Both the position numbers and the translations under genes were made by a program. The notes under the pieces were generated by a model. That model searched no databases. It was given only the letters and a program-made list of their open reading frames with translations, and was not told the DNA's origin. A stretch of DNA of 64,000 nucleotides from Oculina patagonica (Eukaryota), in NCBI RefSeq assembly GCF_052425735.1, contig NC_135760.1, forward strand, positions 4,030,001 to 4,094,000, read 5' to 3'. How positions within the stretch are numbered: position 1 is the first letter of the stretch; each line of letters opens with the position of its first letter. Shown in pieces: positions 1,722 through 58,959 of the stretch.

Positions 1722-2919
1722 TTAGCTCCGTGTAGCCGCACCCACTCCCCGGGGGTACTCCCTATACATGTAATGGCCTATACGAGAGGCTCCTCTGGAG
1801 GTCCCTTTTTCATGCTTCAAGTATATAAAGGAGTAGGGATTTCACAGGCTTAGGTACACGTATATTTAACAATTAGTCCACGAACAGACGCACCTTATGG
1901 CTGTATCATTTAAACTTATTTAATTAACGCTACATAAAAACGTCTTCAAGACTTCCTGTTTAGGCATATGTTATGTCTTTTCGGTATATGAAAGGGGTGC
2001 CTTTTCTGTCAAAATTGTATATAAAAGGTAAGGGGTTGGACCTCGGGGCGGAGCCTCCCAGTACAACACCCGAGGGAAATGGGTGGGAGGATAACTTTTG
2101 CGTTATAAAAACATGAAAGCTAAAATTGAGGGTCATACTTTTGAAAATGAAAAATTTACCACTCTATCTACCACTCTAGGCTTTTCGTTTTTCATTTTTT
2201 CTTGTCTTTCCTTTTTCTCCATTTCTTATCTTTTTGCTGCAGTTGTTGGCCTATAACTGGGCTTGCTTGCAGTTTAGAAATTTTCGAGAAGGTGCTATAC
2301 AACTTGCCACTGAAGAGCCATAGGTGGCTGAGGCAAATTCTCCTACGAAATTTTCACTTTAATTTTTAAGCATTTTTGTAGGTATTTCAAGCACAATTCA
2401 CCCAATCACTCTAATTGGGGCATCATCGGAAAGAGCTTTTCCTCCTGCAGAGTTTGAGTGTAAGTGATGCCTTTTTTGATCAAAGATGATGACGTCACAA
2501 GTGGAAGAAAGAGCAACGATCGTCAAGGCCGGTTTAGGCCGGCACGGGAGCCAATCGCCACACAAGATTCGAAAGGTAGTAGTTTCTAAAACGACACGTT
2601 AGGTCCGTTAGCGTTCGCAATGATCTACTTGCATTGTTGTTTTACTTCATGTTGTACAGTACTTTTATTGTTTTTTCACTTCTCTACTAAGTAACAGTTT
2701 GGGGGCTTCACCGATGTTCCCCCTCACTAGATCCGCCCTCTAAATATTAGGCAAGCTGGGAATGTGAGCACATTGTAACCTAGACAGCATTCCGGATTTT
2801 TTCCCCAAACATAAAACGCCATAGTGTTCAAAATACAAAGTCCTCAATGGTCAGGAAAACTATCCTCCCGCAAAAATAACCAGACTGCGAGCTGTCTTTT
2901 ATTCAGCCTCAATTGCTTA

Positions 2920-3380
2920 CCGTATTTACTCGAATAAGCGCCGCGGCGCTTATTAAATTTTTGGCGCCTCAAGTGTGGCGCTTATTCGAGGGCGGCGCTT
3001 ATTTAAAATTTGAACGCCACAAAGAGTATAATCTTTTACAGTAATAAAAAAATCCCGTCTTTTGATCGTCAGTATTCGTCTCTTGCTGAAGAGAAGGGTG
3101 GCACTAGCTGTCCGGGCAAAGTTCGTGGCTTTTACAACGTTTTCATAACTATGTATTGTAGAAATGTTGGAAAAAAACTAATGGACGAACGGTAAAATAA
3201 AAAACATCGCTTTTGATGGAAAATATGTCCAAGTTTTTTTTTAAGAGATGCTCTGTAGTGCTGTTTTTAGCTGAAAAAAATTCCGCGAATACGCGCCGCA
3301 TGGGGACTGCGGCGCTTATTAACTTTTTTGTCCCAAATGCAGCGCTTATTTGAGGGCGGCGCTTATTCGAGTAAATACGG
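2920..3380. mobile_element. Tc1/mariner-pogo-like MITE
   Basis: TIRs CCGTATTTACTCGAATAAGCGCC / GGCGCTTATTCGAGTAAATACGG with TA on both sides; internal GCGGCGCTTATT repeats. Confidence 0.75.
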
Positions 3381-3487
3381 TATACTGTAGAGGCCATTTT
3401 AAAATAATCAAGTGTAAACCAACACTTTACTTTTAAGAAAAAAGAGTTTTCGCAGTTTACAAACGAAAAGACATGCTTTTATCTCCC

Positions 3488-3954
3488 CGCGCCGCGGCGC
3501 CTATTAATTTTTTCGCGTTTCAAGTGCGGCACTTATTCGAGGGCGGCGCTTATTTAAAATTTGGACGCCACAAAGAATTTATCTTTAAAAAATAGCGTCT
3601 TTTGATTGTCAGTCTTCGTCTCTTGCTGAAGAGAGTAGTGGCGCTAGCTGTCCTGGAAAAGTTCGTGGCCTTAACAACATTTACAGAACTACGTTGTAAG
3701 AATGTTGGATAAAATTGGAAAAACTAATGGGCAAGCGGTAAAATAAGCACTTTGAAATGCGAAACATCCCTTTTGATGGAAATAAATGTCCAAGTTTGTT
3801 TTGAGTTGCTTTGAAGTTTTTAAGTTTTACGGAATTTCTCGAATAAGCACCACATCTGTACTGCAACGCTTATAGGGGGGCGGCGCTTAATATTAACTTT
3901 TTTGTCCCAAATGCGGCGCTTATTTGGGGGCGGCTTTTTTTCGAGTAAATACGG
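3488..3954. mobile_element. Second, 5'-truncated copy of the 2920-3380 MITE
   Basis: Clear similarity to 2940-3380, ending in TCGAGTAAATACGG-TA. Confidence 0.7.
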
Positions 3955-4258
3955 TACTCTTATCAGAAGAAGAGCCCTTTAAGCTACCAGAACAAGGATA
4001 AAAATAAAAATAACTTTTTGAAAACACTAAACAACAACGACATTGGTGCATGTAACCTGTAAGCAAAATAAATTTATTTCCCAAACTAAGTAACATCATC
4101 AGTATTTGGCACAAAATGAAATATTATTGACAATACTTGTTAGCTATAACTTGAATAATACCATAGAATACAAAGATGTAATTCTGATGAAATATTGACA
4201 TTGTATACATGTAAAAGAAAGATAGCCAGATGTTATAGCAACTATTAGGACATTTCAT

Positions 4259-4550
4259 AGAGCGGTTTCATTTGAGTGTCGAAAGTAATTTGCATTTGCT
4301 TTGGTTTTGCATTACTACGCTGGGTGATTGGCTTAAAAATCTCGTGCCAATTTCTCAGCCAATCAGAACTAAAACAGAAAGCAATCATGTCTCGCTTGCA
4401 CACGTTTTCCCGTGCTTCTTGCTAGTTTTATGTATTTGGTTCGAGTTTTGATTGGTTCACTGGGTTGCCAGTGTCCTTTGTGATTGGCCAGAGTAATTAC
4501 AGCTAATAACTTTGCTCTTGGATTTACGACACTCAATTGAAAACTGCTCT
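4259..4550. mobile_element. Palindromic MITE with AG...CT ends and AT flanks
   Basis: TIRs AGAGCGGTTTCATTTGAGTGTCG / CGACACTCAATTGAAAACTGCTCT; AT on both sides; related copy at 32198-32479. Confidence 0.7.
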
Positions 4551-5731
4551 ATCAATCACATATCAAAACATGTAATGTGTCCGTCATGAGAAATTATATA
4601 GTTTGTGCAAGTGTAATAAGAACTTTATGCAGATAAAAGTTTTGCCAAAGTCAGTATTCCAAAATTCAGCAAACTACATCGCTGTAACAGCTTTTAAATT
4701 AAAATGTTTCTGATTTATAAACCAGGAACATTTCCACTGCTTCCTCAAAATATTGGAGAGAGCACTGGATGAACATATGTGAATGCTATTACCCTTCCTA
4801 TAAATAAATATGTTGAGTGAGTATTAGTAATCGTGGCACCAATTCGTGCTTCTTATATAATGGATCATTTCACACATGTTGTAGTTTTATGGTTTTGAAA
4901 GTTTTCGAAACCAGCAATTTCATTTTCCTCTCTCATATGTATTATATAATCCAAAAAAAAAAAAAAAAAAAACTGGCGTATAAAATTTTAAAACTACAGA
5001 ATAATATTACTGGGCTGTGAAAACAACTACAGCAGATAGGCTTAGCTATTTGTTGTTACCTAATAACTAACCATCTAACCATAGTACTATTGTTAAGTTC
5101 TTGTGGAAATGTGATCTTTAAACAACCTCAATCCCAGGGGCTCTCTCTCTCCACACCCTTGGTCTGGCAGGGGCGGGGGGGGGGGGGGGTGGGAGACCTT
5201 GGGAATGAGGTTAAAAAGCAAACAGAAATAAATACCATTATTACATCAAAACAGTCTCATCCATCAATTTTTGTGTGCTAGCAGATTTATAATGATAAAG
5301 AATACTAAAGTGTGTGGCGATTAACCCCATCTCTAGTAAAACACCCCACCCCACTCCCATTAAAAGGTCTTGAAAAGGAAGTTAAGCTTACAGGAGCTAA
5401 TTTACAGAGTTCTTGCTGTTATAATTCACTGAGAATAGTTAATAAGTTCTTTAATAAAACAATTTTGACAAGGCGAATAAGTTTGCCATAGTTACCGGTA
5501 CACTACATGAACAGTCTATAAATAATGAAAAATTTTACCCAAACTTTTTGCCTCTTACAGGCTGCCGGTAACAAAATGAATTTCTATAACAAACTACTAC
5601 CAAAATACTGTGCAATTCATCAGTACAATTTTTACAGAAATTATTTAATTTCTCATTAACCTACTTGTTTCCTACCACTCCCAAACAATAGATACAATTA
5701 TTAATTAACCATTTACCCCAGTGAATTGTGA

Positions 5732-8700
5732 TTAGACCACCTTGGAACTATCCAAGTTATTTTTCTGATAGAATTGCTCAACAACATCAATATTTGCTGA
5801 CAAGAGATCAAGGAAATCTTTCATTTCACTCAAAACAGTTGCTTCATCTACTTTTCCCCGACCAAGGCTGGCAATGAAGTCCTTGCGATATGGGACAGCC
5901 TTCATGGCAAGCTGGAGAAAGAGAAAATTTTCAAAATTTTTGTTAGTGAACACAATTTCTCACTCAGTCGCCGTAAAGAGTGGCAATTGAAGTATGTGTA
6001 TGATTTAAATAAACACATTGGAAACAAGTGGACACCTTAGGCCTATCTGAAAATAAACCTTTTTTTTAAGAAGAAAATCACACCCTTCAACCTCCAGGGG
6101 AAACGAAAATTGCTTCAAGAAATTAAGGGAAGAAATTACAGAGAAGTACTATCCAAGGGAAACGAAAATTGGTTCGAGAAACCGGGAGTTACAAAAAGCT
6201 GAGGTTTCGAGAAATTAGGATTCCACTTGCAGCATCAGTTTTTTACCTTTCATTTTTGTTCAGGTAAAACAGTATATTATAATACAGTTGAACCCCACTA
6301 TTTCAAAGTCCCAGGGGAAAGGGAAAAAGTTTGAAATAGCGGGGTTTGGAAATAGCCAGGGTAGCAAGAAATTTATAAACAATAAAATATTTTTAATTAA
6401 ATACAGTATGGAAAAGACAGGGATTAAATAATAAGGATTTTATGTCAGATAAACCTGCAGATGCTGTTGCTATGAAAGTATTCTGTTGTTGTTTTCTTAA
6501 TACTTGTGTCGAACATCAAAGACAGCTGCCTTGTTCGCAGTCGAATCTCTGACAGTTACCTCAGCAGCAAACAAATTGTTGCACAAGTGAAGATGGTCGT
6601 AAACGGCTTGTGTTGACACACCCCTAAAGTAACTGCCTATTATATTATAAATGTTTTATTATTCGGTGGGGCGAGGAACAAATAAGTATATAAAACCGCA
6701 TGTTACAGTTTCATTTCAGGAGGGCTGTGGGTGGCAATTAGTTGGAATTGTTATTAGCGCACTGTACTCCAGATTGAATGTCTGGGTTCAAGAACTACTC
6801 TCAACCTTAGGTTTCTAAATGGGGAAAGGCATTTCATTTGGGAAACAGTCTGACAAAGTATTCAGTGTTCACCTGTCACGATTTGGCATACTTTGCTTTA
6901 AACCTCAGAAGTTTCAAAAGTGATGATCAGCCTTAGTGGTGAGAGCCACTTTTGACTCATCCCATGCAGTCTATGGCTTTTTCTTACTGAATGGAATTTA
7001 ATGTTATGCATAAAAAAGAGGTAGCTTTTATCTTTTTAAGAATCAAAATTTGCATCTTAGGGGAAAATACAGACTTTCTTAAAGTCATTTGGTTCTTGTT
7101 TTCGATTTGGCAGTAGAACCTGGCGCGAACGACAAGCTCTCGCGCTTCACGCTCGCTGACTAGTGCTCCATGGACATTTTTACGTGATCTGATCGTGTTG
7201 ATCTCATGTGAGCTCAAATTGTAGGCAAGTCTAGGGGAAATAATGACTATGTAGAAATATGAAAATAAGGACCCCTCACTCCCCCCCCCAAAAAAAAAAA
7301 ATATAAGCCCTCTTTAGACAGAAAAATCCTTCTGAAAATAAGATATTACATTAAGATACAGATACATCTTTTCTGATTATAAGCCCCTATTTATAGGGCT
7401 GGTTTGTATTTTATGTGGTTAGAGAATTATTAAAGTGACTGTAGGACTTCTATGGGGTTCCATATCATAACAACTAATATCCCCCCTCCCCCATCCACCA
7501 TATATATGCCCTCCCCTCTTAAAAGAATGTTAAGCTAATATAAGCCCAGGGCTAAGTTTTTTTCAGAATTTTACAGTAATTAGGTGGGAATAATGATACC
7601 GTGATAACAGGACAACAAACTATAAAGTTAGAGGCCTACATTTCTACATTATTTATATTTATTACTAGCAGCCTAACCACTGGCTATACCAGACTAACAC
7701 CACATTTATTGATCCCTGTCAAGGGTTTTAAGGAAACACAGATATGCCCTTCAGATGTAGAACTTACAGAAAAAATTCCTTGGACCATCCAGCCATGAAA
7801 TTTCTTCAGTGATCCCTCATAAGCTTTCTTGGCGCATTTTACCAGATCTTGTTCTCCCGTAAGAACCTCCTGGAGAAAAACGATGATAAATTGCATTGCC
7901 CTGTAAGAGAGAAAGGTAATGATGCCCAATGAAATGCGGTGAAACACTCTGTCTTGTGCTTGATATAATTCAGTTTATAAAAACTGACATTCATCTTGGA
8001 CACGACTAACCTTTTCAGCCAAAGCAGGGCATCTGTGGCAGAGTTCTTTGCCTGAGTTGTCTTTTCCTCTATTTCACTCTCTACAATGTCTTGCAGAGTT
8101 TTATATTTTTCTGGATCTTTGGCAAATTTTTCTCTCAGTTTCTAAAAGGAAAAGCATTGGATTGATCTCATTACTTGCTTAGTCTCATTACTTGATTAGT
8201 TCCATGAGGTTAGAATAATGTTGGGAACTATGGGAGTTCATTGCTGTACTGATTCAGCTTCAGATACTAGTTGAAATGCAGTGATGTAAAGGTTGTGGTA
8301 TATACAGTGGATTGAGCAGCCCAGAATCAATCCTTACCAGGGTTCTTTTGTTGTGTACTTGAGCAAGACACTTTACTCTCATATTACCTCTCTTCACACA
8401 AGTGTGTATAAACGAGTACAGGCAAACCGTACTGTTTGATAAACGTGATGACATTCTGGTGGTAGCCTGCAATGGACTAGCATGCCATTCAGGGGAAGTA
8501 ACAATCCCGGGGGGGGGGGGACTCCCATAAATTCGGATAGGGGTGTGCCGCCAAGGTTCTTAAACCCTGACCCTATTTAAGGATAAAGAAAGCGAAAATT
8601 GATACCCTTTTTTAGGCCCAAAACCGAAAAAATGACACCCTATTCAAGGGGGGAGAAGCGTTCCGTGACGACTCAAATAACGGCTAACCGCGCAAGGCAA

Positions 8701-11515
8701 GACACAAATCTTTATAAAATCACTTTTCTAATACCTGAACAGAAAATTTAGTTTTAAGATATCTTTTTTTTGTTTAGCTGGGTGTTATTTTAGCTAATAG
8801 AATTTAGGTACCCTATCTAAGGATCACACCTGAAACACATTGCTAAAAGGAGCAAAAATAATACCCTACTTAAAGACTGAGAACCTCAAAAACCATACCC
8901 TATCGGGTGGCACATACCTATATAGGCCACATATGGGAGTACCCCTACCCCCCGGGAGCATGCCATTCAGAAGAGGTAGCAATACTCCAGTAGCTTTATG
9001 CTACAGAAACCAAGATAAACTCTAGTGGTATCGGACACTTTGCCCTATGCAGACTTTGTTGAACTTGTAGTAAGTTTGAAAATTTACAATTCCATATTAA
9101 CCACCAAGAAGGATAGCCATCTTTCTGAGCACATTCACACACTAGAGAAAATTAATTGGATTTGTAATGATACTTAATCCAGGAGGTTTTAGTAATGTGT
9201 AGACCCAAAAAATATCCATACCCTCCCCATGGAAAACCATTGGAAATTCCGCGGGGGAAAGGGTCTTAAAGACCAACATTTTAAAGGAAATTGTGTACCT
9301 AAACTGGAATATCCAGATGGAAAAAAGGCAGGGGTTCAAACCCAAAAAACCATATGTGGGGGAGTACGTATATTTTTTGGAACAACACAATGGATTAATT
9401 ATGACATTTACTCAAGGTAGACGGACCAAAAAATCTGCAAAAATCGGATCAATTTAGGTTTCTGGAAACTGCTCACCGACCCCTCCTCAAACCTAACATT
9501 AACCCTTACTTATCGCTTTGGGCAAAATGTTAGTTTGGGGAGGGGGGCGCCAGAATTAACCTAAATGATCCCAAAAATCTAATGCGATTGTGTGTGATTA
9601 GAGGAGCTAAACACAATAATAGGATAGACAGTATTGAGCATACCCATTTTTTCGACTTTTTTACATTAATAGTGTGATTATTTACTCTCAAGGGATTAAT
9701 TTCTCAAGGGATACTTTCCTGACCGTGGAAAAGTACACGTTTTACATTTTAAAAGTGATATTCAGCTTTTTATCTCAACGCAAGTGTGTCTGAAAGGCGA
9801 TCTATAAAAAGCGTTGCAAAACAATGGATTGCGTAACTAAAACACAAATAAATAATCACTTACCTAGCACTTACACGTTTAAAAATTACAAACGTCAAAA
9901 ATAAACCATACCAAAAACTCGCTCTTTTCAAAATATTATTGAAGTTAAAACAAATGCAAGAGATGGGGGCTTCTTTTAGCTTAGGAGCGGTTAAAAATTA
10001 GGCCAAATTTGGTCGCTACATGTAAGCGCAACTCTATTTCGTCATCAGCCTAGGTCGTTAGGGACGTGACCTCGCGTTGAAGGGAATGACAGCAGTTCAT
10101 ATCGGCTTTACACATGCGATCGTATCTACGCAGTTCGAGTGGAATTCAGTCAAAGACAGCAAAATTCTTTCATATTTCATCTTCAAATATAATTCGAAAG
10201 CATTCACTGTATATATGCTTTTGTTTAATCCTGGGTCTTGATATCCGACCCTCGCAGAGCCTAGACAAAATGCACTTGAGTGTAACATTTGTTTACACTG
10301 CTTATATGCGCAATGTTTTCTCCGACAGTAGTTGGAAATATTGTATTTTTTTTCGTGCTTTTTCGTGGAGCAATCGTAACGATACGGCCTTGAACATATT
10401 GAACAGCGGTCTACCTATAACAATTCAAATATGGCGTTGCAAAAAAAAGCGTAGAACGCATTTTTCTGTTTCATTTGCTAATTTCGCTGCTGTAATTGAC
10501 TGCCTCGAAAGGTCCTTGCAATTTTAAAGTATAGAATTGTCAGATCTTGCTGAAATTTGCACTGTTTATTTGTGTAATGTTAAGGAATATGTGCCTAAAT
10601 ACCCGGCGCGGACGAGCCATTTTTGACTATTTTTTTATATGGCTGCATTTCCTCCGCGAAGATAGGAAATTGTTAAACTAAACTACAAAGAAACTGTAAT
10701 GATAAGTTCGAAGAACAATGCACAGGATAAACCTTCGACTCATACTTCATGCAAAAACGTCGATATCTCGAAGAGACTTTGATTTTCTACCTTACCTTAG
10801 AAAGAGGTATACAAAATTAAATACTACAACATCACATTACCTTTATATTACCATTGATGTCTGACTTGACCGGCGCAAAAGCTGTAGGTCCTAAAACATC
10901 TGAAAAGAGGAAATTAATTCAATAATAAATTAATAGTACTTAATAATCAATAATATATTCGTTTACTTTATCAAAAATTATGATAAAATGTTGCAGCTCT
11001 ATATTATCGGCTATAGAAAATTTAAAAATCCAAACATAAAATACTTTTAAAAGTAACTACACCGGTAATAGATCAAGCTCAATTTCTTATACATAACTAA
11101 TTTGCGATTGCAAAAATTACAGAAAGAAATATCATGCTCACTGTTTGTAGACGCTGATTTGGATTTTTTTCATTTGGGTTCAAACTCTTCATATACTCGA
11201 AATCAAATATAACAAATTAAAAGGATTACACTATAATTTATAATGATATGCCAAACTGCACTCGCAAATCAATCAATACTTAAAATCCTGACATAATACA
11301 AAATCTGACACGCAGGCATTGATTGCCCAGTGACCTAACATGAGATTTAAATGAATAAATTGAGAAATTTATCCAGGTTTTTAATCTACAGGAAAGCTTT
11401 ACGCACCGAAAAAAGGCACTACTTCACTTGCAGCATCTAAAAATGATTTAGTTTCGATTCTGCCATCCTCTGGAATCGGTAAAAATCTGTGTTGAGCCTC
11501 GGAAAAGAACGACAT
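5732..11515 (-). CDS. GLTP: Glycolipid transfer protein (GLTP family), 203 aa; exons 11515-11407, 10899-10841, 8141-8011, 7900-7768, 5911-5732
   Basis: Five GT-AG exons join in phase: MSFFSEAQHRFLPIPEDGRIETKSFLDAASEVVPFFD-VLGPTAFAPVKSDINGNIK-KLREK...SATDALLWLKR-AMQF...AYEGSLKKFHGWMVQGIFS-LAMKAVPYRKDF. GLTP motifs D-x3-N, WLKR and HGW are present. Could be the FAPP2/PLEKHA8-type GLTP-domain paralog. Confidence 0.92.
8275..9055 (+). mobile_element. Degenerate tRNA-derived SINE interrupted by a CCCGGG-bounded repeat
   Basis: TTGAGCAAGACACTTTACTCTCA core similar to the SINE at 13534; 3' part resumes after 8957. Confidence 0.6.
8506..8956. repeat. Dispersed repeat family with CCCGGGGGG..ACTCCC / GGGAGTACCCC..CCCGGG ends (related pieces ~1746-2075, ~28831-29260, ~50180-50326)
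   Basis: Inverted terminal motifs with poly-G/poly-C tracts; related sequence recurs in the window. Confidence 0.6.
9195..9390. repeat. Short palindromic MITE-like repeat (related copy ~23060-23250 in an intron of the P-like transposase)
   Basis: AAAATATCCATACCCTCCCC...TGGAAATTCC; the related copy ends GGGTATGGATATTTTCTG. Confidence 0.5.
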
Positions 11516-11851
11516 AATTTTTCCGTGCTTGTTCGGTTCAGGATCAGGAAGCGCGCGCCGGTTTAGGATCTTGTTGGTGACTTGCTAGGGTGGGGTTAGG
11601 ATACGCTGAGGCCATTTATTTCCATTTCTTATTTATTCAAGCAGGTAATAAATAAACAGTCGTTTCAAACCTTTTAAAATATCGAAAAAAACGAAAAATT
11701 TGCACAGAATACCGCATTTCTTTTCAGTTTCTAGACTTTTTCTTTGTGATATGTTTTCCTCACCCCCACCTACTGAGAAAGTTTTGTCGTGTCATTCATA
11801 AAGCCCGGGAAAAGATTTCTGGGAAATGTTTTGTTCAGTTTATATTTTATC
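11516..11851. promoter_or_regulatory. Probable bidirectional promoter between GLTP and the zinc-finger gene
   Basis: The two ATGs are divergent and 336 bp apart; GC-rich GGAAGCGCGCGCCGG patch. Confidence 0.55.
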
Positions 11852-14800
11852 ATGGCGTCTGAGTTATCACGTATTCAAGTCCGTCAAAATGAGGTAAAAA
11901 TCACGATCTTCTTTATTTTGTTACCAGTGGCGTTTATACGCCAACTTTTCTAACGTTGAGAGTTTTTGAGTCAAACGAAATAAGATTTGAGTTTTCGAGT
12001 TATGACAGAAGTCACGTTTCCATTCACAAACAAGAATGTGTGAAACAATTGTCAATGACTCTAACGTGCTCGCCAGTTTCATTCACTACTTTTCCCCCGA
12101 ATTAAGGGCAAGATTTGAGGTTAAAGTTGTTTATATCAAGGATAATTTTTTTTATCGTCGACGATCGTATGTTTACGTAATTTACAAGAGTTGAATTATT
12201 ACTTGACGATTATTCGTTCTCGAATGTAGTACTTCTGAACGCGTGGTGTGGTTGTCTTAATTCTTTTTATAAATATTCAGTTTTTCAGTCATTCAGTTCG
12301 ACAAGTAGCTCAGGCCTTTACGATTTAACGGAGATCAGTTAATCGAAACTGAAATTCTAGTTGTTTTCAATTTTTACAAATTAAAATTGAATTTTCCTTG
12401 TTGGTGGAAACCGATTGATATAAAATGATGTAAGCTTAAGTCTTATGCCTTATTTAGTTCCTTTACTACGTGTAAAAGAACAATGTGCCTTTCAGCTTGT
12501 AGTAGGGTAAAAAAAAGATGAATGTTCCAAAATTCTAATTTAGTTCATTGCAAAGTGGTAACGATCAATTATTGTACACTATATTTTGTTTTGTTTTGAT
12601 AAACTGCAAAGTGGTGAAATTTAACACCTAGACCACCGTAAACGCTAACCAATATTTCTCATAAAGTAACCACATTTAGGAAATGTTTATAAATCAGTAT
12701 ACATTTAAACATCCAGTTAAAACCACTAGTGCTAATACTATTTAATTTGTAAGCCAGGAATGATAGATGTTGAGGTCAAGGGTCTTTTAATTTAATTTTG
12801 TCATTTCATTTCAGGGGTACTGTCAAAATTAAAGCCAAGACCTTCATTTTAAGATGGTCTTTTGTTACTTCTGAGCCAGAACAACTGCTGATGTAACTTT
12901 TAAGCTATTGTTCTGGTTCTCAAATAAGACAATTTTTTCCTGATATAAGTTTTACAAAGTTTAATTGGCTTTTTTCTTTCAGCATTGAAGGAAGAACTAC
13001 AGAAATTGAAGAATTCTGTTGTTATTCAATAAGTAAAAGAAATTTGATACCTTGTTGCATGACTGCTCACGAAACATAAGAAGATTACCTTTGCCCCCCT
13101 TTTATTATTTTGTTATTGGTTTTAAAAACTATATACATGGTCACTGCAGTCAAAGCCAGTTGGAGTTGATAGGGGGGGGGGGGGGTGAGTCTTGCAACTT
13201 TGATTGGCTGCGTTCAACCAATAGAAGAATGAAATAATACTTTGAGAGTGATTTGAGAGAATATTTTACTCTTTTCCCTCAGGTTCTACTTTTCAAGAAT
13301 GGTCAACCAGTTCTTAGAGTTGAACGAGGGACTACCTTGAGTGTCATCAAATTGCTTTATCAAGCTGACCCTAGGAACAAAGGAACAGTCATCGCACTTA
13401 GACCAGATACGAATGACCCTTTACCTTGTGTTTTAACACAAGACCAGTCTCCTCTTGAAGAGGCAAAATATGAAATAATCACACATGGTAAAATAATTTT
13501 GCACTTTTATTTAATTAATATTAGCTTGATCGTGGGAGGCGTGGTGGCCTAATGGTTAGCGTGCTTGACTCCCAGTCGAACGGCCCGGGTTCGAGCCCTG
13601 CTGGCCAGGGCACTACGTTGTGTTCTTGGGCAAGACACTTAACTCTCACAGTGCCTCTCTCCACCCGGGTGTATAAATGGGTACCAGCTAATTTATTGCT
13701 CGGGGGTAACCCTGCGATGGACTAGCATCCCATCCAGGGGGAATTGTAGCAATATGTTTCTCAATGTTCCCAGTCCGCTTAATGCTATGGAAACCGGGAT
13801 AAGCTCCGGCTGTACCCCTGGGCCACTTTTTAATCTCTGGGCTCGGACACAGACTTAACCTTAACTTGATCATGGCACTTCTAAAGGGTTATCGTAACCT
13901 GAAACAAATTTTGACATCATGTGATTAAGTTAGTTGGGAAGAACTTAACAGTTGACTAGAGATCACACAAAGTTTCAAGCCTACTTCCATTAAATTGTAA
14001 ATATTTTCCCCTTATAGACTTATTTTTTTTTATACCAGTGTTACTTTTTCTTCCTGACTAGAACCACCTTCAAACAATTCTACTCAACCAGCTGCCAGGG
14101 AAGCAACAAGCACCAGACAATCTGATGGAAAATCTTCAAACACGGCAAGGTTACCGTTCTCAAAAAATCCAGTTGATCCTTCTCAGGGGGCATCATCAGC
14201 TGTATCACAAGTGGGGCTCCCTTTTAGTCACGCAACACCTCTTACAGTAAGCATCTCACCAGAAGGTAATGCTAAAAGCTTGGCAAGTCACAGAGACAAC
14301 AGCAGTAGCTCATTGCTCTTGGCCAGAAGGAGCGATAGCTATTTTCCTTCACGTGCAAGCGTTCCTTCAGTATCTCGTCGCAAGAAAACAGCTCGGAAAT
14401 CTGTTTTCCCCCGGAAAGTCTCCCCAACCTCTAGTCCTAATCTCAGCCTTAACAGCAAGTCCACACATGGAATACACCCTCAAGGTAGAGAGATAATAAC
14501 TTACTCTGTAAGACGCACAGAAACTGTTGACTCGCCAGGCCTGTGTGACAGCACTGAAAATGGAAGTGTCAGACCTTCTATGGAGGAGACTGGAGAGGAA
14601 ATGGAATTGACAGCCCGACATAGTGAGAACTATCATGGCAGCGATGCTGTGTCAGCATTTTCAGTAGAGGATTCAGCAGGCTATGCTAACTTTCCAACCC
14701 TCGAAAGTTCTTCCACAAATGGTTCAAGTCCTGCCATTAGTGATGGGCATCCTGCTGTTATAGATATTCACAGCGACTCAAGGGAGACGAGTGGTGGGGA

Positions 14801-19374: not shown

Positions 19375-20026
19375 CTCTATGGTTATTTTTTCAATACATG
19401 TTATGCATGTCAATTAGTTATGAATACTCAAGATGCAACATTTACAGTAAAGGATCAATATATTTTCACGAGCATGCATAGATGAGCCGAATTTATTTTG
19501 TAGACTCCTAACTGAAAAGTCTCTCTTGCTCGCCCCAGATCCTTTTCGAAAAATACGCTAAAAAAGGACCGCTTTGCAGTCTTGTAATTGGCCTTACAAA
19601 GAAGGATTTTATACTGCCGTGTTGTTAATACGTACTTTTAACCAATGAATACATATAGGATTTTTAATTGCAAGAATTAAAAATTAAAAATAGAAAAAGA
19701 ATAGGTTGATACAGTACAAAATTAATTCTCGAAGCTTTGTACGTACCCGGCGCTTTAATAATTCTTCCTTTGCCTCGCCATTTCACTCGCGATTTGGAAG
19801 TTTAGTCTCATAAAGTCTTGTCTGAACCTATCTTCAATAGCTTCTCTTGCATTTCTAGCCATGGTAAACACTTACAGTCTGTAATTCAGCGGGATATTAA
19901 TACCTGTCTTGCTCCAAAGGTTATTGAAATGTTCAACCCCGCCGGAAAAGAATGATTGTGGGCGCCAGGGATTAGGGATTGCACGTGACCGTGCGAGAAA
20001 AGGGCGTCATGCAGGGTATGATGGGT

Positions 20027-21332
20027 CACAGGCGGCCCAAGCTCTCTATCAGATTACCTTTGGACGTGACTCTTGCTTACGAGCGGTGTTGTGTTACAAA
20101 GATTCGAATTATAAGGGTTTGTATGGGAAACAACGGTTTTGCTTTAAAAGTAAAAAAAAATGTATATTTTGTGAATAAAGTTGACTTACCCTGATTCGTT
20201 GTTTCATTCTTTGTTGTCTGCCAGCTTTTCAGGTCGATCCAACGCGTTTTCGGCGAGTTATCGTTATTTAGGTGTTCCACTGCTAAAATAAAGACAAGGC
20301 TGTACACTGATTTCCGGAGTGCCCGCCGCTCGAAGCGAATAAATCCTCTGAAATTAGTCCTGTCGACCCATATTCCTCCGCAGAATCAAAGAAGAGATGT
20401 TGAAGTTCCATGTCTGTTCACTTGATTCGCAATTCTGCGCTCAAACGCCTTCGCTACGAAAGCTTTTTTCCGAGATTGCTTCGCTTCACAAATTCGAAAT
20501 AGCCGCGTCCAAACTGGCGTGGACGTTCTCGCGGCTCGCATAGCATGTTGGGTGACTATAATTAACCCGACGGGGGTGGACAGCATCGATTTGTCGACAG
20601 CCAATCCAGAATGCACCCAGGGTCCCCACGTGCTTTATTTGTCAACCCACGGCGAGGCGCTTTGTTTTCGTCGACCAATCAAAATCGCGCCGAGTCGTGT
20701 TTACAAAATTAAAAAAATAACGGCATAGAAAACGTATTTTCACCTGAGGAATCTATCGATCAGTGCGAAAAAGCGATCCATTCCGAAGCGATGACTTCTT
20801 CATCGTGGCACTGGAAGACATGGTAGGTTAAACTGTTTTCTTAACGCAAAAATTTATCCACAAAGCTGACGCTTACGGCTTTTGATCACATAGAAAAGTG
20901 AAATCTAATTATGAACATCGGTCACGTATCTTGTAGGTTGTTATCAAACTTCGAGCACTGCGAAGGAAAATTGTTAGCAGTTAGAGAGTTACTTGCCGAC
21001 GGAGAGAAGTTGAAAGAGAACGTTCCCTGTAAGGCAAGTTCGTCTTTGTTCGGCCTTTTCATAAAGCAGATTTGGGGCGAAAAAGTAAAGCTGGTAAAAC
21101 GCGGTTCGTCGAAGCAAGGACGACAAAATTTCTACCTTGGACTCGCAAGGAAATCCCCAACAACGACAGAAGAAAATCAACCCATCGCCGAGACACCGTT
21201 AAAACCCGGATGGCATTTGCTGAATGATCAAGGAGGACATTTATCGTTCGTAAGATATGAGCCCTGGTCATTCCGCAAACAGAGAGTTGTAACAGAGGTA
21301 AGGGTGGCAGACTCTGTCTCTCTGACATCACA
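20027..21332 (+). repeat. Left TIR (1306 bp) of the P-like element
   Basis: Reverse complement of 26684-27988; I noticed only 3 substitutions and one 1-bp indel by eye. Confidence 0.95.
20530..20700 (+). promoter_or_regulatory. Putative transposase promoter inside the TIR (mirrored at ~27315-27485)
   Basis: CpG-rich; ZNF143/SBS-like GCATGTTGGGTGA, two CCAAT boxes (AGCCAATC, GACCAATC) and E-box CACGTG just upstream of ATG 20791. Confidence 0.45.
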
Positions 21333-24300
21333 TGGATGCCAAATCGACCTGACAAACTTCTTTAAACAAGAGTGTTTGGAGAAATTGCCAACAAGTAAGC
21401 GGATTGAAATTATTTTAACTTTCGTTGATACTTCTAATTTGTGCCTTGGGGTTCCCATCAAAGAAGGAGAAGTGTCAAGTACAATAATCCCCCATGAAAG
21501 TGGTGATTTGGCAACAACTGAAGCTACAGAACGCAGGGCTTTTTCTTCAAACTGCTCAGTACTTGCTAGTGCTGGGCAGTGTTGCTCCAACTGCAAGAAC
21601 CTGCAGCACTTGGAAAAAAAAAGAGAGAAAAGAAAACTCGCAAGCAATGGTCCCAGTCCCTTCACCAACAAGCGCTACCTTTCAAAGGACGAAGTTGCAA
21701 AGCAACTGAAAATAGAAAGGCAAGCAAGGATTAACGCAGAGCGAAGAGAAACGTACTGGAGGGAAAAGTTTGAGGCACAATGTATCGAAATGGAGAAAGA
21801 TGACCACACAGATCTGTGCAAGATGTTTGAAGATGTTGGTGATCACGTGCCTGAAAGTATGACCAGCCTATGGGAACAGCAACAGAATCTACTGAAATGC
21901 AAAAGTAAAAATGCATACCGATGGCATCCAAAGTATGTAACATTTCTCGCATGTTCTTAAAATCTCAATAGGTCACAATATAGCAATCATCATGCTAGTT
22001 TTTAATAACATAGAATATTTCATTGCTAGTCATGCAAGCCTCTCAATATCAACACCCCCTCCCATCCCTTCTCTTCCTCAACACACAAGCACTTTATTGA
22101 ACCCCTTGTCATATATCTGTCAATATTTAATGATTTACGTCCATGTTGTATTTATTTACAGGATCATGAGATTATGCCTGGATCTTTACTGCAAAAACCC
22201 CTATGTGCTTGATCCACTACGTCAATTCATTATTCTACCAAGCAATAAGACAATAAGGTGAGGAACACTAAATTATACACATGGAAATGCATATTACACA
22301 TTTTTAATATCAAAAATAAAGTGACTACTATACATGCTCATGATCATCCAGAAGTACCTTGTTGTGCATGCAAATACTTCATGCTGCTTAGTAACTTCAG
22401 GAATTAACATCATAAAAGTAATCCGAAATATTAATGTTGTGGTTTTTGCATGAACTGTAACAATTAATTCCCAAACTTTAATTATCCCTTACAGTGAAAT
22501 GTTTATAAAACTAAACCTAAACTTCTAACTTCTACACTATTCTTTAATTACAGAATGTATAAGAACAAGGTTAAAGAGACTCCGGGGTGGAATGAAGAGG
22601 TACTCATGTGGTGCTTGAATGCTGCCAAAGAAAATGGCTTGAAGCCAGGAGATTTCATGGGTGGTTTTGCAATTGATGAGATGAAGATCCAGGTAAATAT
22701 GTTACAGTCTTGTAATGTACAACATTAGATAAAAAGTGATAAAAGTTAAAAATTTTTTTTATCCCTTTCAATTTTTTATCCATAGGAGAACCTAGGGATG
22801 ACATCTGAAAATGGGAAGCATAAGCTTGTGGGCTTTGTTGACCTTGGGATAGGTCATGATATCATGAGAACTTTGTCAGGTACATACTAGTGTTGTTTCA
22901 TACAACCTCTTTACTCCCCTTTATAAAAGGAATAGAAATTACTTAGGTTGGGGGTTCTCCAGACCAAAAATTTGAAATAAAAGTATACAGTTTAACTGGA
23001 ATTTTCAGAGGAGTAGGGATTCTTATTGAAAATTCCTTCTGTGGGGGAGGTTTGGAAATTGTGTTATTCCAGAAAATATCCATATCCCTCCCACGGAAGG
23101 TTTTTTGGTTTTAATACCCCACCCCTCTGGAAATTCCAGATAAGCTCCATACTTCCCTTTAAAAATTTAAGCTTTCAAGACCCCTCACCACCTCAGAATT
23201 TCCAATGACCTTCCATGAGGTGGGTATGGATATTTTCTGAAACTGCACATTTGATGGAACTACACATTTACAAAATTCAATATTTAAACAATTTTCATTT
23301 TCCTGTCATTTTCAAAACTTGACATGTGTATAAAATTAAAATCTACCTGACTTTGAACTAAGTATTTTGCCCGTACATTATATTATTTTCAATAAAGTAT
23401 TGTCAGTACTTTTATTCTTTAACATATCATTTGTAGGTGAGGACAGTGAACCAGAACTTGCAACACATGTGCTACAATTTGTTTTCCTGAGTGATGGTGG
23501 CTTCAGGTTTCCGATTGCGCAATGGCCATCGGCAAACTGCACTCCCAGCGATCTATACCATCTGTTCTGGGAGGGAGTCCTGAAGATGTTAGAAATAGGA
23601 TTTGAGTAAGTGGATATTAAGTTAGGTATTCAGTTATGACTCTATACAATTCAAAAAGTATCATTATAGGGTAAAAAATGTGCATACAAAGCTAAACTAC
23701 ATAAAGAATTTGCTGGGTACAGTGCTGCTGCAGTGCCCCCACTCCTTTATAGTCTATTTCTAGCCCTTTTTTTTTTGGGGGGGGGGGGGGTTGTCACTCA
23801 TATAGCTTGAGTTGACAAATATTTAGTGCCTGCTTACGATAAAAAAGACTGGGTGTTTAAAAGCTCAACTGGTTAGAACAGTCTACATAAAGGGTTTAAA
23901 AATTAAAGATGAATCAATGTTAATTGTGAGTCTTTATTTCTTACGATAAAAAAGACTGGGTGTTTAAAAGCTCAACTGGTTAGAACAGTCTACATAAAGG
24001 GTTTAAAAATTAAAGATGAATCAATGTTAATTGTGAGTCTTTATTTCTAACTTAGGATATACTGGTGTGTGCTTGATGGGGCAGACTGCAACAGGCAGTT
24101 CATTAAAATTCATTTTAAGGGCAAGGACCCTGCTGATAGCAAGTTTATGACCACCAATATATACACCGGATGCCCGATGATATTTATCATGGACCCAAAG
24201 GTAGTCTATCATTAAAATTGAGTCTTGTTATTGTATCAGCCCAATCTTAAAGTGCTCATTGTAGAACACTAGGACACTTATTCATTCGTCTGTTCATTTG

Positions 24301-24914
24301 TTTTTTCGTTCATTTTTGAATCCATCCATCCATCCATTCACTTAATCTTTTGGGTATTCTATCAGCCCATGGCCAGCAGTCAGTCTGCTTGTAGTTATTT
24401 ATTTATTCATCCATTCATTCATTCTTCGTTGTTTCATCCATTCATACACCAATGCATTAATAAATTTTTTTGGTCAGGGAGGGGTGGAAAAGGGGATAAT
24501 TTAGGCTGAAAAAGATCATGTACACCGCTTTATAAAATCAAAATTTTTCTTATGTTTACCCCTTACAATACTGTCAAGTCTTCAATCAATAAACAATCTC
24601 AGTTATTAATATTAAAACAGCTTAAGTCTTTTTTGCAGTAACACCTTTTATATATTCAACAGCATAACATTAAGAAAATCTGGAATAACATCTACAAGAG
24701 CAACAAGACTGGAAACCCAAGATGCCTCAAAATCGGAGAAAAGCCAATCACCTGGAAGCAGTTTAGAAGTGCCTTTGACTGGGACCAGCAGAGCTTCTCG
24801 CTCCCACTGCACGAGAAATTAACCCAGCAGCATTTAAACCTTGATTCAGCAAGCATCATGAGAAACAAGCTTGCAGAAGATGTATTAGATGCCAAGATGT
24901 TATTTTTAATGCAG
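20791..24914 (+). CDS. P-element-type transposase, C-terminally truncated (641 codons over 8 exons: 20791-20822, 20937-21932, 22162-22257, 22554-22692, 22786-22879, 23437-23605, 24056-24200, 24663-24914), with an N-terminal RFX-like winged helix
   Basis: All junctions GT-AG and in phase. Motifs YRWHPKIMRLCLDL..LPSNKTIR, IDEMKIQ (first catalytic D), VGFVDLG, ATHVLQF, LDGADCNR (second D), MDPKHNIKKIWNN (D-x2-H), KLTQQH..MRNKLA. No exon with the catalytic E found downstream. Confidence 0.85.
23834..24047 (+). repeat. Exact tandem duplication, 2 x 107 bp, in transposase intron 6
   Basis: TTACGATAAAAAAGACTGGG...GTCTTTATTTC occurs at 23834-23940 and 23941-24047. Confidence 0.9.
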
Positions 24915-25689
24915 GTATTTATTTTATGCCTTGCACGCTTCATCAAATTCCATTAAGAATTATAATGTTTCTAACGACAGAGTTTTCTACTGTTAATTAT
25001 TTCTGTCAAGAATGCTGTGTTTTCTGCTCCCAAGGTTACAGTACAAAATAATACAAGATACAGTATTTTAAAACCTTTTTAGCACACAAAAAGAGAGTGA
25101 AAAGAAATGATAGCTGAGCACTGCCTGTTGATATTTCAAGATGGCATTTTCTTCATTTTTATTATTGTATTAAATTGTAAATTGTAATCATGTCATTGAT
25201 ATTTTTGAGATTGTGGTTTGAGAATCTTCATGTATATATTATTCATGTATATATTTACCACTTTGAAACAAGATCCACTCTATCTTTGGAGCAATGTAAA
25301 AGATAATTCAGGCCAGAATAGTTTTAATGACATGTAGATGTTTTGGGTTTTAGTACATGCCCATTTACAATACAGCATATCATCACAAAAGTTAGAAAAA
25401 TGTAATGTGTGTTGTATTTAAGCTTATGCTTGTGTAGTTTATCACCAATGTACAAGTAGTGTACATGTTTGTGTATATTTTGTATATATACAATAAGAGA
25501 TCTGATGGAATTTTTTTCATGTAAATAATTATTGTTTAAATAATTTCTCGATTTTTAGGCTTAAGTTTTATATCAAGGAATCAATATAAGTCAAAATTAT
25601 AAAGAGCTTAGATCAATCGCAAAATATATAAAAAAATATAATTAAATTTTTGGAACAACAAATTAGAATAATGATAATAAAAGAAATAC

Positions 25690-26683
25690 CTGGAATGGGA
25701 CACTATCACTTTTCTCTTTTTTCTTTTCTTGCCTTTGCAAGACTCGTTTCCGTAGTTCCACACTCTTTTTCACTTGGCATTCTCTGCGAAAATCTCTCAA
25801 GAACTGACACGCTCCCATGTTCACATAGTAAAGCAATATGTCTGACAGAAGCTTCTCAATGAGTTCCTGAGGAGAACAAAAAGAATTACCGATATAAATG
25901 ATGATTGTTTTACATTGAGATTTAAATTGTTTATACTCACAATTTTGAAGATTTATGTTCTGGATCGGCAAAACAAGTGAGAGTCGCCATCTTAATTTAC
26001 AAGTACATTGTAGTTCCCAGTCTTTATCCTCCATACATTAATGGGCGTCTACCGTACATGTGCTTGTCTCTTTCTTCATTATTTTATTTTAATATATTAT
26101 ATCCAGGCAAACAGAATTTTTATTGTAACTTAAAAATGATTAAGAAAGCGATTTCTTACCTTGTGCTTACAGATATCCTCATTTTCAAAGCACTGTAGCC
26201 AACTCGTCTTCAATTCTTGATCAGCTTTTAACTCAACTAACGCCATTTCAACCATTTCTTCCCGCGCTTTTTTCAAAATGTGCAAATTGAGTAATTCCAC
26301 TCGCCTTTTCTCTAGTTCCATAAAGAAAATGTACGCCTGGTCTGAAATGTGAAGCAATCCTCTTTCGCGGTATTGTCTCCCTTCTGTCACTTCTAGCGTT
26401 TCCGGGAACATTGAAGTTTCCTCCAGTTCCGAATAGGGTCGGATGACGTTCTCTTCAAGCAAATGACAGGCTATCTGTTGGTTCTCAACTCTGGCCAGCG
26501 TGGAACTGCACTTGGTGAACAGATTCTTTTGAATGTATTTTCTGCAGCGATTTAGAACCTTCCTCACAGCCCAACCCCCAACATGTCGTACTTTTGATCG
26601 ACCTACTCCGCTCATTTCATCAACATCAAAACGGACGGCCTCCTCCTGCCTTTGCTGATTCACGACAGAAACTAGCCCTGATG
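25690..26683 (-). CDS. Second (convergent) gene of the P-like element, partial; exons ~26683-26160 and 25866-25690
   Basis: Open frame runs from the inner TIR border (..TSGLVSVVNQQRQEEAVRF..KVRHVGGWAVRKVL..RGLLHISDQAYIFFMELE..CKHK), donor AAG|GTAAGA, acceptor CTCCTCAG, in-phase exon ELIEKLLSDILLYYVNMGACQFLRDFRR..PFQ|GT. Confidence 0.7.
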
Positions 26684-27225
26684 TGTGATGTCAGAGAGAC
26701 AGAGTCTGCCACCCTTACCTCTGTTACAACTCTCTGTTTGCGGAATGACCAGGGCTCATATCTTACGAACGATAAATGTCCTCCTTGATCATTCAGCAAA
26801 TGCCATCCAGGTTTTAACGGTGTCTCGGCGATGGGTTGATTTTCTTCTGTCGTTGTTGGGGATTTCCTTGCGAGTCCAAGGTAGAAATTTTGTCGTCCTT
26901 GCTTCGACGAACCGCGTTTTACCAGCTTTACTTTTTCGCCCCAAATCTGCTTTATGAAAAGGCCGAACAAAGACGAACTTGCCTTACAGGGAACGTTCTC
27001 TTTCAACTTCTCTCCGTCGGCAAGTAACTCTCTAACTGCTAACAATTTTCCTTCGCAGTGCTCGAAGTTTGATAACAACCTACAAGATACGTGACCGATG
27101 TTCATAATTAGATTTCACTTTTCTATGTGATCAAAAGCCGTAAGCGTCAGCTTTGTGGATAAATTTTTGCGTTAAAAAAACAGTTTAACCTACCATGTCT
27201 TCCAGTGCCACGATGAAGAAGTCAT
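26626..27225 (-). CDS. TIR-duplicated 5' end of the transposase: ~161-aa product with the RFX-like domain only (exons 27225-27194, 27079-26626)
   Basis: Mirror copy of transposase exons 1-2; reads past the TIR border into IRASFCRESAKAGGGRPF-stop. Confidence 0.55.
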
Positions 27226-27988
27226 CGCTTCGGAATGGATCGCTTTTTCGCACTGATCGATAGATTCCTCAGGTGAAAATACGTTTTCTATGCCGTTATT
27301 TTTTTAATTTTGTAAACACGACTCGGCGCGATTTTGATTGGTCGACGAAAACAAAGCGCCTCGCCGTGGGTTGACAAATAAAGCACGTGGGGACCCTGGG
27401 TGCATTCTGGATTGGCTGTCGACAAATCGATGCTGTCCACCCCCGTCGGGTTAATTATAGTCACCCAACATGCTATGCGAGCCGCGAGAACGTCCACGCC
27501 AGTTTGGACGCGGCTATTTCGAATTTGTGAAGCGAAGCAATCTCGGAAAAAAGCTTTCGTAGCGAAGGCGTTTGAGCGCAGAATTGCGAATCAAGTGAAC
27601 AGACATGGAACTTCAACATCTCTTCTTTGATTCTGCGGAGGAATATGGGTCGACAGGACTAATTTCAGAGGATTTATTCGCTTCGAGCGGCGGGCACTCC
27701 GGAAATCAGTGTACAGCCTTGTCTTTATTTTAGCAGTGGAACACCTAAATAACGATAACTCGCCGAAAACGCGTTGGATCGACCTGAAAAGCTGGCAGAC
27801 AACAAAGAATGAAACAACGAATCAGGTAAATCAACTTTATTCACAAAATATACATTTTTTTTTACTTTTAAAGCAAAACCGTTGTTTCCCATACAAACCC
27901 TTATAATTCGAATCTTTGTAACACAACACCGCTCGTAAGCAAGAGTCACGTCCAAAGGTAATCTGATAGAGAGCTTGGGCCGCCTGTG
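26684..27988 (-). repeat. Right TIR (1305 bp) of the P-like element
   Basis: Reverse complement of 20027-21332. Confidence 0.95.
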
Positions 27989-28014
27989 GATGGGTATGCA
28001 TCTTTTGATGTTTC

Positions 28015-28561
28015 CACAGGGAGCCCGAACGCTGTATTGGCAAAGTTAATAATGAAAATAAAGATATGTTTGTTACCTGTGCTCCTGTGTCTTTCTTTGT
28101 CCTTAAAATGGTTGTGCTCTTGTGTCTTTCTTTGTCCTTAAAATGGTATTTGAATCGGTGCGAAAACGGTTTGAGCAAGCCTTGTCTGACGCTCCGTAAA
28201 TAACGACGCAGTTAACACGTCTCGTATTTCCATTCATGTTATTAACTATTAATTCTCAACGGGAGAGCGTTAAATTGAAATACGAGATTATCTCCCCAGG
28301 AGTGTTAATGGTTAATATGGAAAGAAATAGTTAATAACATGAATGGAAATACGAGACGTGTTAACTGCGTCGTTATTTACGGAGCGTCAGACAAGGCTTG
28401 CTCAAACCGTTTTCGCACCGATTCAAATACCATTTTAAGGACAAAGAAAGACACAAGAGCACAACCATTTTAAGGACAAAGAAAGACACAGGAGCACAGG
28501 TAACAAACATATCTTTATTTTCATTATTAACTTTGCCAATACAGCGTTAGGGCTCCCTGTG
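28015..28561. mobile_element. Foldback MITE related to the P-like element (236-bp arms, 75-bp spacer, 7-bp TSD)
   Basis: Ends CACAGGGAGCCC...GGGCTCCCTGTG; TSD ATGTTTC at 28008-28014 and 28562-28568; arms 28015-28250 and 28326-28561 with one mismatch seen; ~35-bp tandem repeat in each arm. Confidence 0.9.
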
Positions 28562-54700: not shown

Positions 54701-54904
54701 GAAGAAAAGGGTGATCCTGAATTTCCTTGTGGAAAATGTGGCATAAACTGTCCAGAAGAGCCAAAAGAATTTAAGGAAATGAGCATTGGTTGTGACAAGT
54801 GCAACCAGTGGTTCCACTGGAAGTGTGTCGACTTAACTGGAAAAGAAGCTGTTCTTGAAGATCAAAATTTGATTTGGATGTGTGATACCTGCTCTCCCAA
54901 GTAA
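51768..54904 (+). CDS. ISL2EU accessory protein, ~681 aa: SAP-like, SWIM, YqaJ (lambda-exonuclease-like) nuclease, PHD finger; exons 51768-52113, 52474-52613, 52848-52951, 53045-53217, 53622-54904
   Basis: In-phase exons; SWIM CSCPAGVRGSCKHVAA; YqaJ W..R.GRITAS..G..NE..ASPD..EVKNP..YYTQVQLQ; PHD CGKC..CDKCNQWFHWKC..CDTC. Confidence 0.88.
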
Positions 54905-55195
54905 TCATAATGTGATCCCCAAGTTTAAAGTTATGATGATAAACAGACTGACTTTTAGTTGCCTAGTTGTTCAAAGGATGGGTAATGCTTTACACTGGAC
55001 AGCTCACTTACCACAAGATGGCCAGCATCCTTACCCACTGGCTAGTGATCTATTTACTGTATAGCATTACCTATACTTTGAACAGGCAGGAGCCTAAAGG
55101 TGATCTCTTAAATCATATATACGTTAAAATGCCATACTTAACAACAACTCTGTATGGGTTATCACTTTTCCAGAAAGCCGTTTACAATGCTAATG

Positions 55196-58926: not shown

Positions 58927-58959
<33 letters not shown>

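Follow-up and report, generated by a model that had tools for sequence, protein, structure and literature searches.

A 7,962-bp insertion occupies positions 20027-27988 of the 64,000-nt window analysed here (contig NC_135760.1, positions 4,030,001 to 4,094,000, assembly GCF_052425735.1) from the stony coral Oculina patagonica. At 100 % identity, the window corresponds to chromosome CM126637.1 of GCA_052425735.1, near 4.05 Mb. We consider the insertion very probably a genuine, young copy of an anthozoan two-gene family of P-superfamily transposons, and one that is non-autonomous, doubly truncated and rearranged. The original prediction, made from the letters of the window, had described a Galileo-like foldback P element with 1.3-kb arms and two convergent genes in a non-insect genome, possibly undescribed.

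The element begins with CACAGG and ends with CCTGTG, and the identical 7-mer GATGGGT flanks it on both sides (Table 1). The sequence and an alignment of the two arms (1306 and 1305 nt) confirmed these ends, the 7-bp target-site duplication and the near-identical terminal inverted repeats of about 1305 bp that had been predicted. Globally aligned, the arms are 99.7 % identical, with three mismatches (20185/27830, 20840/27176, 21207/26809) and one 1-nt indel (20189), and the likeness ends sharply at 21333/26683. An inverted repeat of 1.3 kb at this identity, flanked by an identical 7-mer, far exceeds what chance could produce. The intact duplication and the 99.7 % identity of the arms point to a recent insertion, presumably in trans. 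Inverted ends with a 7-8-bp target duplication are a P-superfamily feature, and 7-bp duplications were found at the window element, at a neighbouring miniature inverted-repeat transposable element (MITE) and at a relative from another coral assembly (L005). The outer ~680 nt of both window arms align with both arms of L005. The inner ~625 nt of both consist of a transposase-side leader and transposase codons 1-141, and align only with the transposase side of L005. A search for tandem or direct sub-repeats within the window arms found none. All three arm mismatches (3/3) are of one transition type, the left arm having C where the reverse complement of the right arm has T.

On the plus strand a spliced open frame of about 647 codons extends over 20911-24914 in seven exons with GT-AG introns, in agreement with the P-type transposase frame predicted there. 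Public annotation starts this gene at 20791 with a short additional exon and gives a 642-aa product, on which a precomputed Pfam match to PF21787 (TNP-like_RNaseH_N) identifies the N-terminal part of the P-type RNase H. Single exons of either gene, which are too short to match Pfam alone, gave nothing useful; hits came only from the annotated whole product and from longer open reading frames (ORFs) of relatives. Exon 1 comprises 349 codons from 20911, of which codons 1-141 lie inside the left arm and hence are mirrored on the minus strand at 27105-26684. For exon 1, a full HMMER scan of 1.84 billion representatives gave 380 relatives, the majority as long as the exon itself and the majority stopping at ...YRWHPK. 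No THAP domain was matched by Pfam in any of 30 aligned members (exon 1 and 29 homologues), and Pfam RFX_DNA_binding matched 2 of the 30. An AlphaFold model of exon 1 (predicted local distance difference test, pLDDT, 86) shows a winged helix followed by a beta-rich domain, in which four cysteines are invariant, and then by a long helix and a helical bundle. Its top two fold matches in the PDB were RFX5 (8zjr_M; template modelling score, TM, by target 0.77; root-mean-square deviation, rmsd, 2.1 Å) and the DNA-binding domain of RFX1 (1dp7_P, TM 0.69). As modelled, the N-terminal ~80 residues of the transposase are an RFX-like winged helix that replaces THAP.

In relatives, the next exons encode a putative insertion domain and the C-terminal part of RNase H with NQDCVENHF. 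These are absent after exon 7 of the window copy, and the RNase H C-terminal part, with its third catalytic residue (the E531 motif), was found nowhere in the 64 kb. As no exon carries this residue, the plus-strand gene cannot encode an active DDE (Asp-Asp-Glu) enzyme, and the copy is predicted to be non-autonomous, unable to make active transposase. The 22257/22554 intron appeared as a joint in contigs of sequencing run X10 (listed 'RNA?', same species label), and one X10 contig covers exactly 24661-24914, i.e. the last transposase exon.

The minus strand holds two exons, m1 and m2, from the tail of a PIF1-like helicase gene. For m1, a 186-codon exon, we found 62 anthozoan homologues with 42-94 % identity; 12 of them extend about 110 residues upstream of the m1/arm boundary of the window, and upstream of m1 the homologous loci encode PIF1-like helicase domains. 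Of the helicase gene, the window copy keeps only m1 and m2, without the PIF1 P-loop core and 2B domain; m2 runs into a stop, the next tail exon (m3) being missing. A helicase domain, m3 and RNaseH_C were without a match anywhere in the window. Instead, m1 and m2 are preceded on the minus strand by the mirrored transposase codons 1-141, and public annotation joins these arm-borne codons to m1/m2 as a 320-aa product (P0003, itself among the m1 homologues). The minus-strand "gene" of the window copy is, as read from its exons, a chimeric remnant in which a helicase 3' part is joined to duplicated transposase codons. The separate spliced minus-strand gene of the original prediction therefore stands as far as its exons are concerned, but not as a gene of its own. 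Beyond 26679, contigs of two other samples run into unlike sequence, as would be expected were full-length copies present in those samples.

The organisation of the family was derived from related loci. L005 holds a complete relative, an 11,472-bp element with CACAGG ends, a 7-bp duplication (CCTTGGT) on both sides and arms of ~0.78 kb (97-99 % identity) that exclude the coding exon. It carries a PIF1 helicase gene on the plus strand convergent with a transposase on the minus strand. This transposase has all exons of the window copy and a further ORF with TNP-like_RNaseH_C, PF21789 (E 3.8e-7, above the curated cut-off), and the best PDB sequence match of its last exon is the E531 motif of the Drosophila P transposase (6p5a_A, E 0.064). 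The Glu-motif exon was found in L005, L009, L010, L011 and L012. The convergent helicase-transposase pair is present also in L010, L011 and L012, from three other assemblies, with 49-61 % tail identity and with the 3' ends of the two genes 0.2-0.65 kb apart. Its recurrence in these four loci shows that the pairing is conserved and no coincidence of one locus.

Further loci show the helicase side. In L006 the terminus CACAGGCGGCCC and an arm are followed by a 402-aa ORF with PF05970 (E 2e-23) and a Pif1 2B domain, then by m1 and m2; L002-L004 have the same helicase-then-tail layout at 58 % identity, the terminus and arm being shown in L002. The helicase ORF starts ~0.2 kb inside the arm, its helicase motifs begin at about residue 35, and no Rep/HUH domain was found in the helicase ORFs, so that it is not a Helitron protein. 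In L005, the arm sequences upstream of the helicase and upstream of the transposase are inverted copies of each other. As seen in the relatives, the family plan comprises CACAGG termini, a 7-bp duplication, sub-kb to kb arms and two genes that begin just inside the arms and converge. Gene 1, which is multi-exon, encodes a P/THAP9-type DDE transposase with an RFX-like winged helix, a Cys-rich beta domain, a coiled-coil segment, an HTH (helix-turn-helix) and a split RNase H. Gene 2 is a stand-alone PIF1-like superfamily 1B (SF1B) helicase that lacks a Rep domain and has a helical tail (m1-m2-m3) that is conserved. The relatives have ~150 residues separating the last shared exon from the Glu motif, a region missing in the window copy, in which neither Pfam nor PDB searches matched the GTP-binding insertion domain; the transposase ends ~40 residues past the catalytic-Glu motif.

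The two genes were not seen together in L007 (Exaiptasia), L008 (Paramuricea) or L009 (a distant transposase relative), and the pairing is shown only for the coral loci examined here. At L007 8225-21699 (Exaiptasia diaphana LJWW01000177.1) two convergent helicase-plus-tail genes occur with no transposase exons between them; this locus may be a mirror-image derivative with both sides of helicase type, and a long inverted repeat was not found in it. At L005 11448-12655, where the 3' ends meet, a small palindromic rearrangement has duplicated m3 and fused it with the Glu-motif exon, copied in inverted orientation (90 nt, 100 % complementary), and the 3' junction of the two genes seems to be rearrangement-prone in the family. 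Several relatives hold nested insertions, namely a Harbinger-type DDE_Tnp_4 gene (L002 12332-13468), a Peptidase_C48 ORF of 1012 aa (L010 15718-18756) and a Penelope-like RVT_1/GIY-YIG ORF (L012 13283-14563). In L002/L003 a Harbinger-type transposase lies next to the tail gene; it was considered as the true partner and rejected as a nested insertion, being absent from the other loci.

Comparison with these relatives showed two lesions in the window copy. A central deletion, with its junction near 25090, removed the 3' exons of both genes; at this position contigs from X1, X2 and X7, three of four runs, break or continue into unlike sequence, and we read it as the internal deletion junction. 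On the helicase side, the leader and the 5' ~2.3 kb of the gene were replaced by an inverted transposase-side leader with codons 1-141, which lengthened the arm from about 0.7-0.8 kb to 1.3 kb. The L005 helicase-side leader, helicase domains, m3 and last transposase exon(s) have no counterpart within the window. The 1.3-kb arms had been taken as the architecture of the family, and this did not hold: they are a secondary extension of a ~0.7-0.8-kb arm. Likewise, a two-gene P lineage without THAP was borne out by the relatives, with the two genes convergent, but the window copy is not an intact two-gene element.

Excision of a P element opens a double-strand gap, which is then filled in again from the sister copy, and aborted or template-switched synthesis yields internally deleted copies; such non-autonomous P copies are common (PMC7776569). 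In Galileo, the longest arms are found in non-autonomous copies and arose by recruitment of internal sequence in inverted orientation (PMC3573991). The rearrangement of the window copy may have come about through aborted gap repair with template switching between the inverted arms. A nascent strand re-annealing to the wrong arm, which is possible because the two arms are identical, would copy the transposase side instead of the helicase side. The family transposase would cut and paste the element, its RFX-like head reading sites in the long arms, and the window copy would be mobilised in trans by full-length copies. The helicase probably aids the long-tract repair synthesis that restores the ~11-kb donor, or deals with the hairpin-prone long arms. 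Drosophila PIF1 promotes the synthesis that repairs a 14-kb gap after P excision when POL32 is absent (bioRxiv 10.1101/554550). From the promoter and winged-helix exon, present in each of the two arms, truncated DNA-binding products with a repressor-like effect could arise.

Table 1. Positions of the features of the element and of its surroundings in the window
Feature	Position	Strand	Remarks
Left target-site duplication GATGGGT	20020-20026	none	identical 7-mer at 27989-27995
Left inverted arm, 1306 nt, begins CACAGGCGGCCCAAGCTC	20027-21332	+	repeat search and alignment
Transposase exon 1: RFX-like winged helix (~residues 1-80), beta-rich domain with 4 invariant Cys, long coiled coil, HTH start	20911-21932	+	ends ...YRWHPK
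Transposase exon 2 (HTH region)	22162-22257	+	splice 22257/22554 in X10 contigs
Transposase exon 3, ...AIDEMKIQ motif	22554-22716	+	candidate first catalytic Asp, by motif only; donor position one among several in-frame choices
Transposase exon 4	22786-22879	+	
Nested high-copy small repeat, 45-nt imperfect inverted ends	23026-23252	none	within transposase intron
Transposase exon 5	23437-23605	+	
Perfect 2 x 107-bp tandem duplication	23833-24046	none	intron; one unit only in X2 and X7 contigs
Transposase exon 6, ...LDGADCNRQF motif	24056-24200	+	candidate second catalytic Asp, by motif only
Transposase exon 7	24663-24914	+	last homologous exon of the window copy
Central filler	24970-25608	none	unlike relatives
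Helicase-gene tail exon m2 (ELIEKLLSDILLYYVNMG...)	25666-25866	-	reads to stop instead of splicing
Helicase-gene tail exon m1	26160-26679	-	5' side truncated by right arm
Right inverted arm, 1305 nt	26684-27988	-	repeat search and alignment
Right target-site duplication GATGGGT	27989-27995	none	read from sequence
Neighbouring foldback MITE, 547 bp, termini CACAGGGAGCCCGAA...	28015-28561	none	own 7-bp duplication ATGTTTC

That the window holds an intact, autonomous foldback P element, with native 1.3-kb arms and two complete convergent genes, might be suggested by the open spliced frames that begin in the arms on both strands, by the nearly identical arms with their intact duplication, and by the two genes called here in the public annotation. 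We give this reading hardly any credence: the plus frame stops after 24663-24914 and the catalytic-Glu exon is absent from the whole window, the minus frame is without the entire PIF1 helicase domain, m1 is cut at the arm boundary, and the complete relative L005 has 0.78-kb arms without a coding exon. It is also very unlikely that an unrelated element, either a Helitron or a free-standing PIF1-like gene, inserted in a one-gene P element, or was captured by it, and left the helicase remnant. In favour of this, Helitrons typically encode PIF1-like helicases, and anthozoans have hundreds of PIF1-like genes; moreover, L007 has two helicase genes and no transposase, and the distant transposase relative L009 has no nearby helicase. 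Such a chance nesting is, however, opposed by the same convergent pair inside termini of the same type in L005, and by the adjacent genes in L010, L011 and L012. Nor does a helicase ORF that opens ~0.2 kb inside the arm, with its motifs at residue ~35, leave room for Rep/HUH, and the arm before the helicase is an inverted copy of that before the transposase.

A further alternative is an assembly artefact: inverted duplications are a known product of long reads, and the inner 0.6 kb of the right arm, or the whole inverted duplication, might derive from a chimeric or foldback read or from a mis-join of two copies. Short-read-type contigs of all four runs stop at 26679 and none bridges the right-arm junction, arm sequence being placed on the left arm only. 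Against this, such contig ends are expected where several copies diverge, the identical 7-bp duplication flanks both outer ends, and the four differing arm positions exclude a plain copy of one read. In addition, contigs of run X1, assembled independently of the genome, hold two sampled words from the inner junction of the right arm (26654-26713), where all 31-mers cross from the arm into m1. The intact duplication, the four arm differences and the X1 words speak against the artefact, which is very probably not the explanation. We therefore prefer a genuine but damaged copy of a two-gene family, and several points weigh against that reading. The junction is supported by two sampled 31-mers only, among the runs served only X1 has them, and X1 may be the assembly's own sample; the break of the contigs at 26679 counts in the same direction. 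The family plan is a composite of relatives, none of those examined being fully intact at full length: L005 has a small inversion of its own at the 3' ends; in L010 and L012 there are nested insertions. The two catalytic Asp residues were assigned by motif, and the X10 contigs may come from the window copy or from other copies. The mobilisation in trans, the gap-repair route and the roles of the helicase are what we infer, and the family may already be catalogued in Repbase or Dfam.

The transposase resembles those of the P element and THAP9 (Pdre2) in the split RNase H DDE core (PF21787/PF21789) with NQD.VE..F...RS..GQ.D.PT.LQ around the third catalytic residue. It shares with them a coiled coil and HTH before the core, a multi-exon gene and the occurrence of internally deleted copies (PMC7776569). 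The domain order of P transposase, i.e. DNA-binding head, coiled coil, HTH and RNase H (PMC7776569), is paralleled in the coral family except for the head. P and THAP9 elements differ: their duplication is 8 bp and their arms 13-31 bp long, the head is a THAP domain, the C-terminal domain is acidic and there is one gene only, whereas the coral family has a 7-bp duplication, 0.8-1.3-kb arms, an RFX-like head, a transposase end ~40 residues past the Glu motif and a helicase partner. As originally predicted, a non-insect genome, here that of a stony coral, carries a P-superfamily element whose duplication is 7 bp and whose arms are of kb scale.

With Galileo the family shares a P-type transposase, the 7-bp duplication and long variable arms (0.3-1.2 kb in Galileo, PMC3573991; 1.3 kb here and 0.78 kb in L005). 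In Galileo, too, the longest arms belong to non-autonomous copies with inverted internal sequence, exactly as in the window copy. Yet Galileo elements carry a single gene with a THAP domain, and the arms of some subfamilies contain tandem sub-repeats, while the coral family has two genes, an RFX-like head and no sub-repeats. The label "Galileo-like" is hence apt for the 7-bp duplication and long arms but not for THAP or the tandem sub-repeats, and denotes a structural resemblance only. Foldback (FB-like) elements differ in that their arms are built of tandem sub-repeats, none of which occur in the window arms. Helitrons and Helentrons also encode a PIF1-family SF1B helicase, but in Helitrons it is fused to Rep/HUH and there are neither inverted arms nor a duplication, whereas the coral helicase stands alone between arms and is paired with a DDE transposase. 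AcademH elements are DDE transposons with a helicase helper gene that is not known to be of PIF1 type, and PIF/Harbinger with a Myb-like partner and ISL2EU with a YqaJ partner are two-gene cut-and-paste precedents. These differ from the coral family in the transposase superfamily and in the helicase family. In the literature searched, we found no description of an element of P type that has a PIF1 partner or whose head is RFX-like; the suggestion that the lineage is undescribed holds for that literature, Repbase and Dfam lying outside the search.

The helicase tail was compared with known folds. A profile of the tail family had no match among PDB sequences, and Foldseek of the tail model against the PDB and AFDB-SwissProt gave nothing significant. 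The model (pLDDT 79) aligned weakly with the C-terminal domain of P transposase (6p5a_B 617-714, Z 5.0, rmsd 3.6 Å over 96 residues, VIA-align wide), which is in the noise range for helical folds, and the same domain was the rank 12 weak match of the model in AFDB-SwissProt. As these scores lie under the level that the tool makers deem safe for helical folds, we treat the similarity as a lead and not as a finding. A kinship of the tail with NDC10_II or integrase-like proteins, hinted at by a protein atlas, was dropped as unsupported elsewhere. By eye, m3 (e.g. L012 11951-12250 and L010 12264-12464) resembles a SAP-type DNA-binding motif (...SQLVLLCKAYNV...SNKLAMARKLAEAV...). The transposase ends so soon after the Glu motif that it has no room for a P-type C-terminal domain. 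One tentative and rather doubtful extension of our reading is that this undescribed P lineage has split its machinery. The transposase would have lost the P-type C-terminal domain, the helicase tail would fold like it, and the helicase would be recruited into the transpososome, where it would be needed to move or re-synthesise an 11-kb element with kb-long, hairpin-prone arms. In that case the window copy would represent a naturally occurring derivative that has lost both halves, and its two promoter-plus-winged-helix modules might serve as an in-built repressor.

The usual view is that DDE transposons of the cut-and-paste kind depend on the repair and replication factors of their host. If the proposed plan is true, a P-type element that keeps a PIF1 helicase is a natural experiment concerning the limits on movement and donor-site restoration of large, long-armed elements, and the part of host PIF1 in repairing the P-excision gap in the fly raises its significance. 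The swap of THAP for an RFX-type winged helix indicates that the DNA-binding head of the P superfamily is exchangeable, which bears on the possible origins of THAP9-like and RFX-like host proteins. At a practical level, the annotated 320-aa and 642-aa "genes" of the locus are transposon wreckage, and arm length is a poor classifier, the 1.3-kb arm being a recent accident.

Other features of the copy lie in its introns and centre. Over 23026-23252 the contig word depth was 2,000-13,000 in all four runs, compared with ~40-100 nearby, so that this nested repeat is a very high-copy element of O. patagonica and related corals; it is not present in the homologous intron of L005. The 107-bp tandem duplication, perfect in the window and represented by a single unit in X2 and X7 contigs, varies in unit number between copies or samples. 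The 640-bp central filler showed no similarity to anything compared.

The MITE lies 19 bp from the right duplication of the element and has 236-nt perfect arms, each with a 2 x 35-bp tandem repeat. Its termini share 14 of 18 bases with those of the P-like element, and these related termini together with its own duplication indicate recent activity of a related transposase in this genome. The genomic neighbours of the element are a BTB/BACK/PHR gene on one side and a C2H2 zinc-finger gene on the other. Elsewhere in the window, 47029-62484 and 51680-57449 contain several diverged families of direct repeats and a 106-nt perfect inverted pair 5.5 kb apart.

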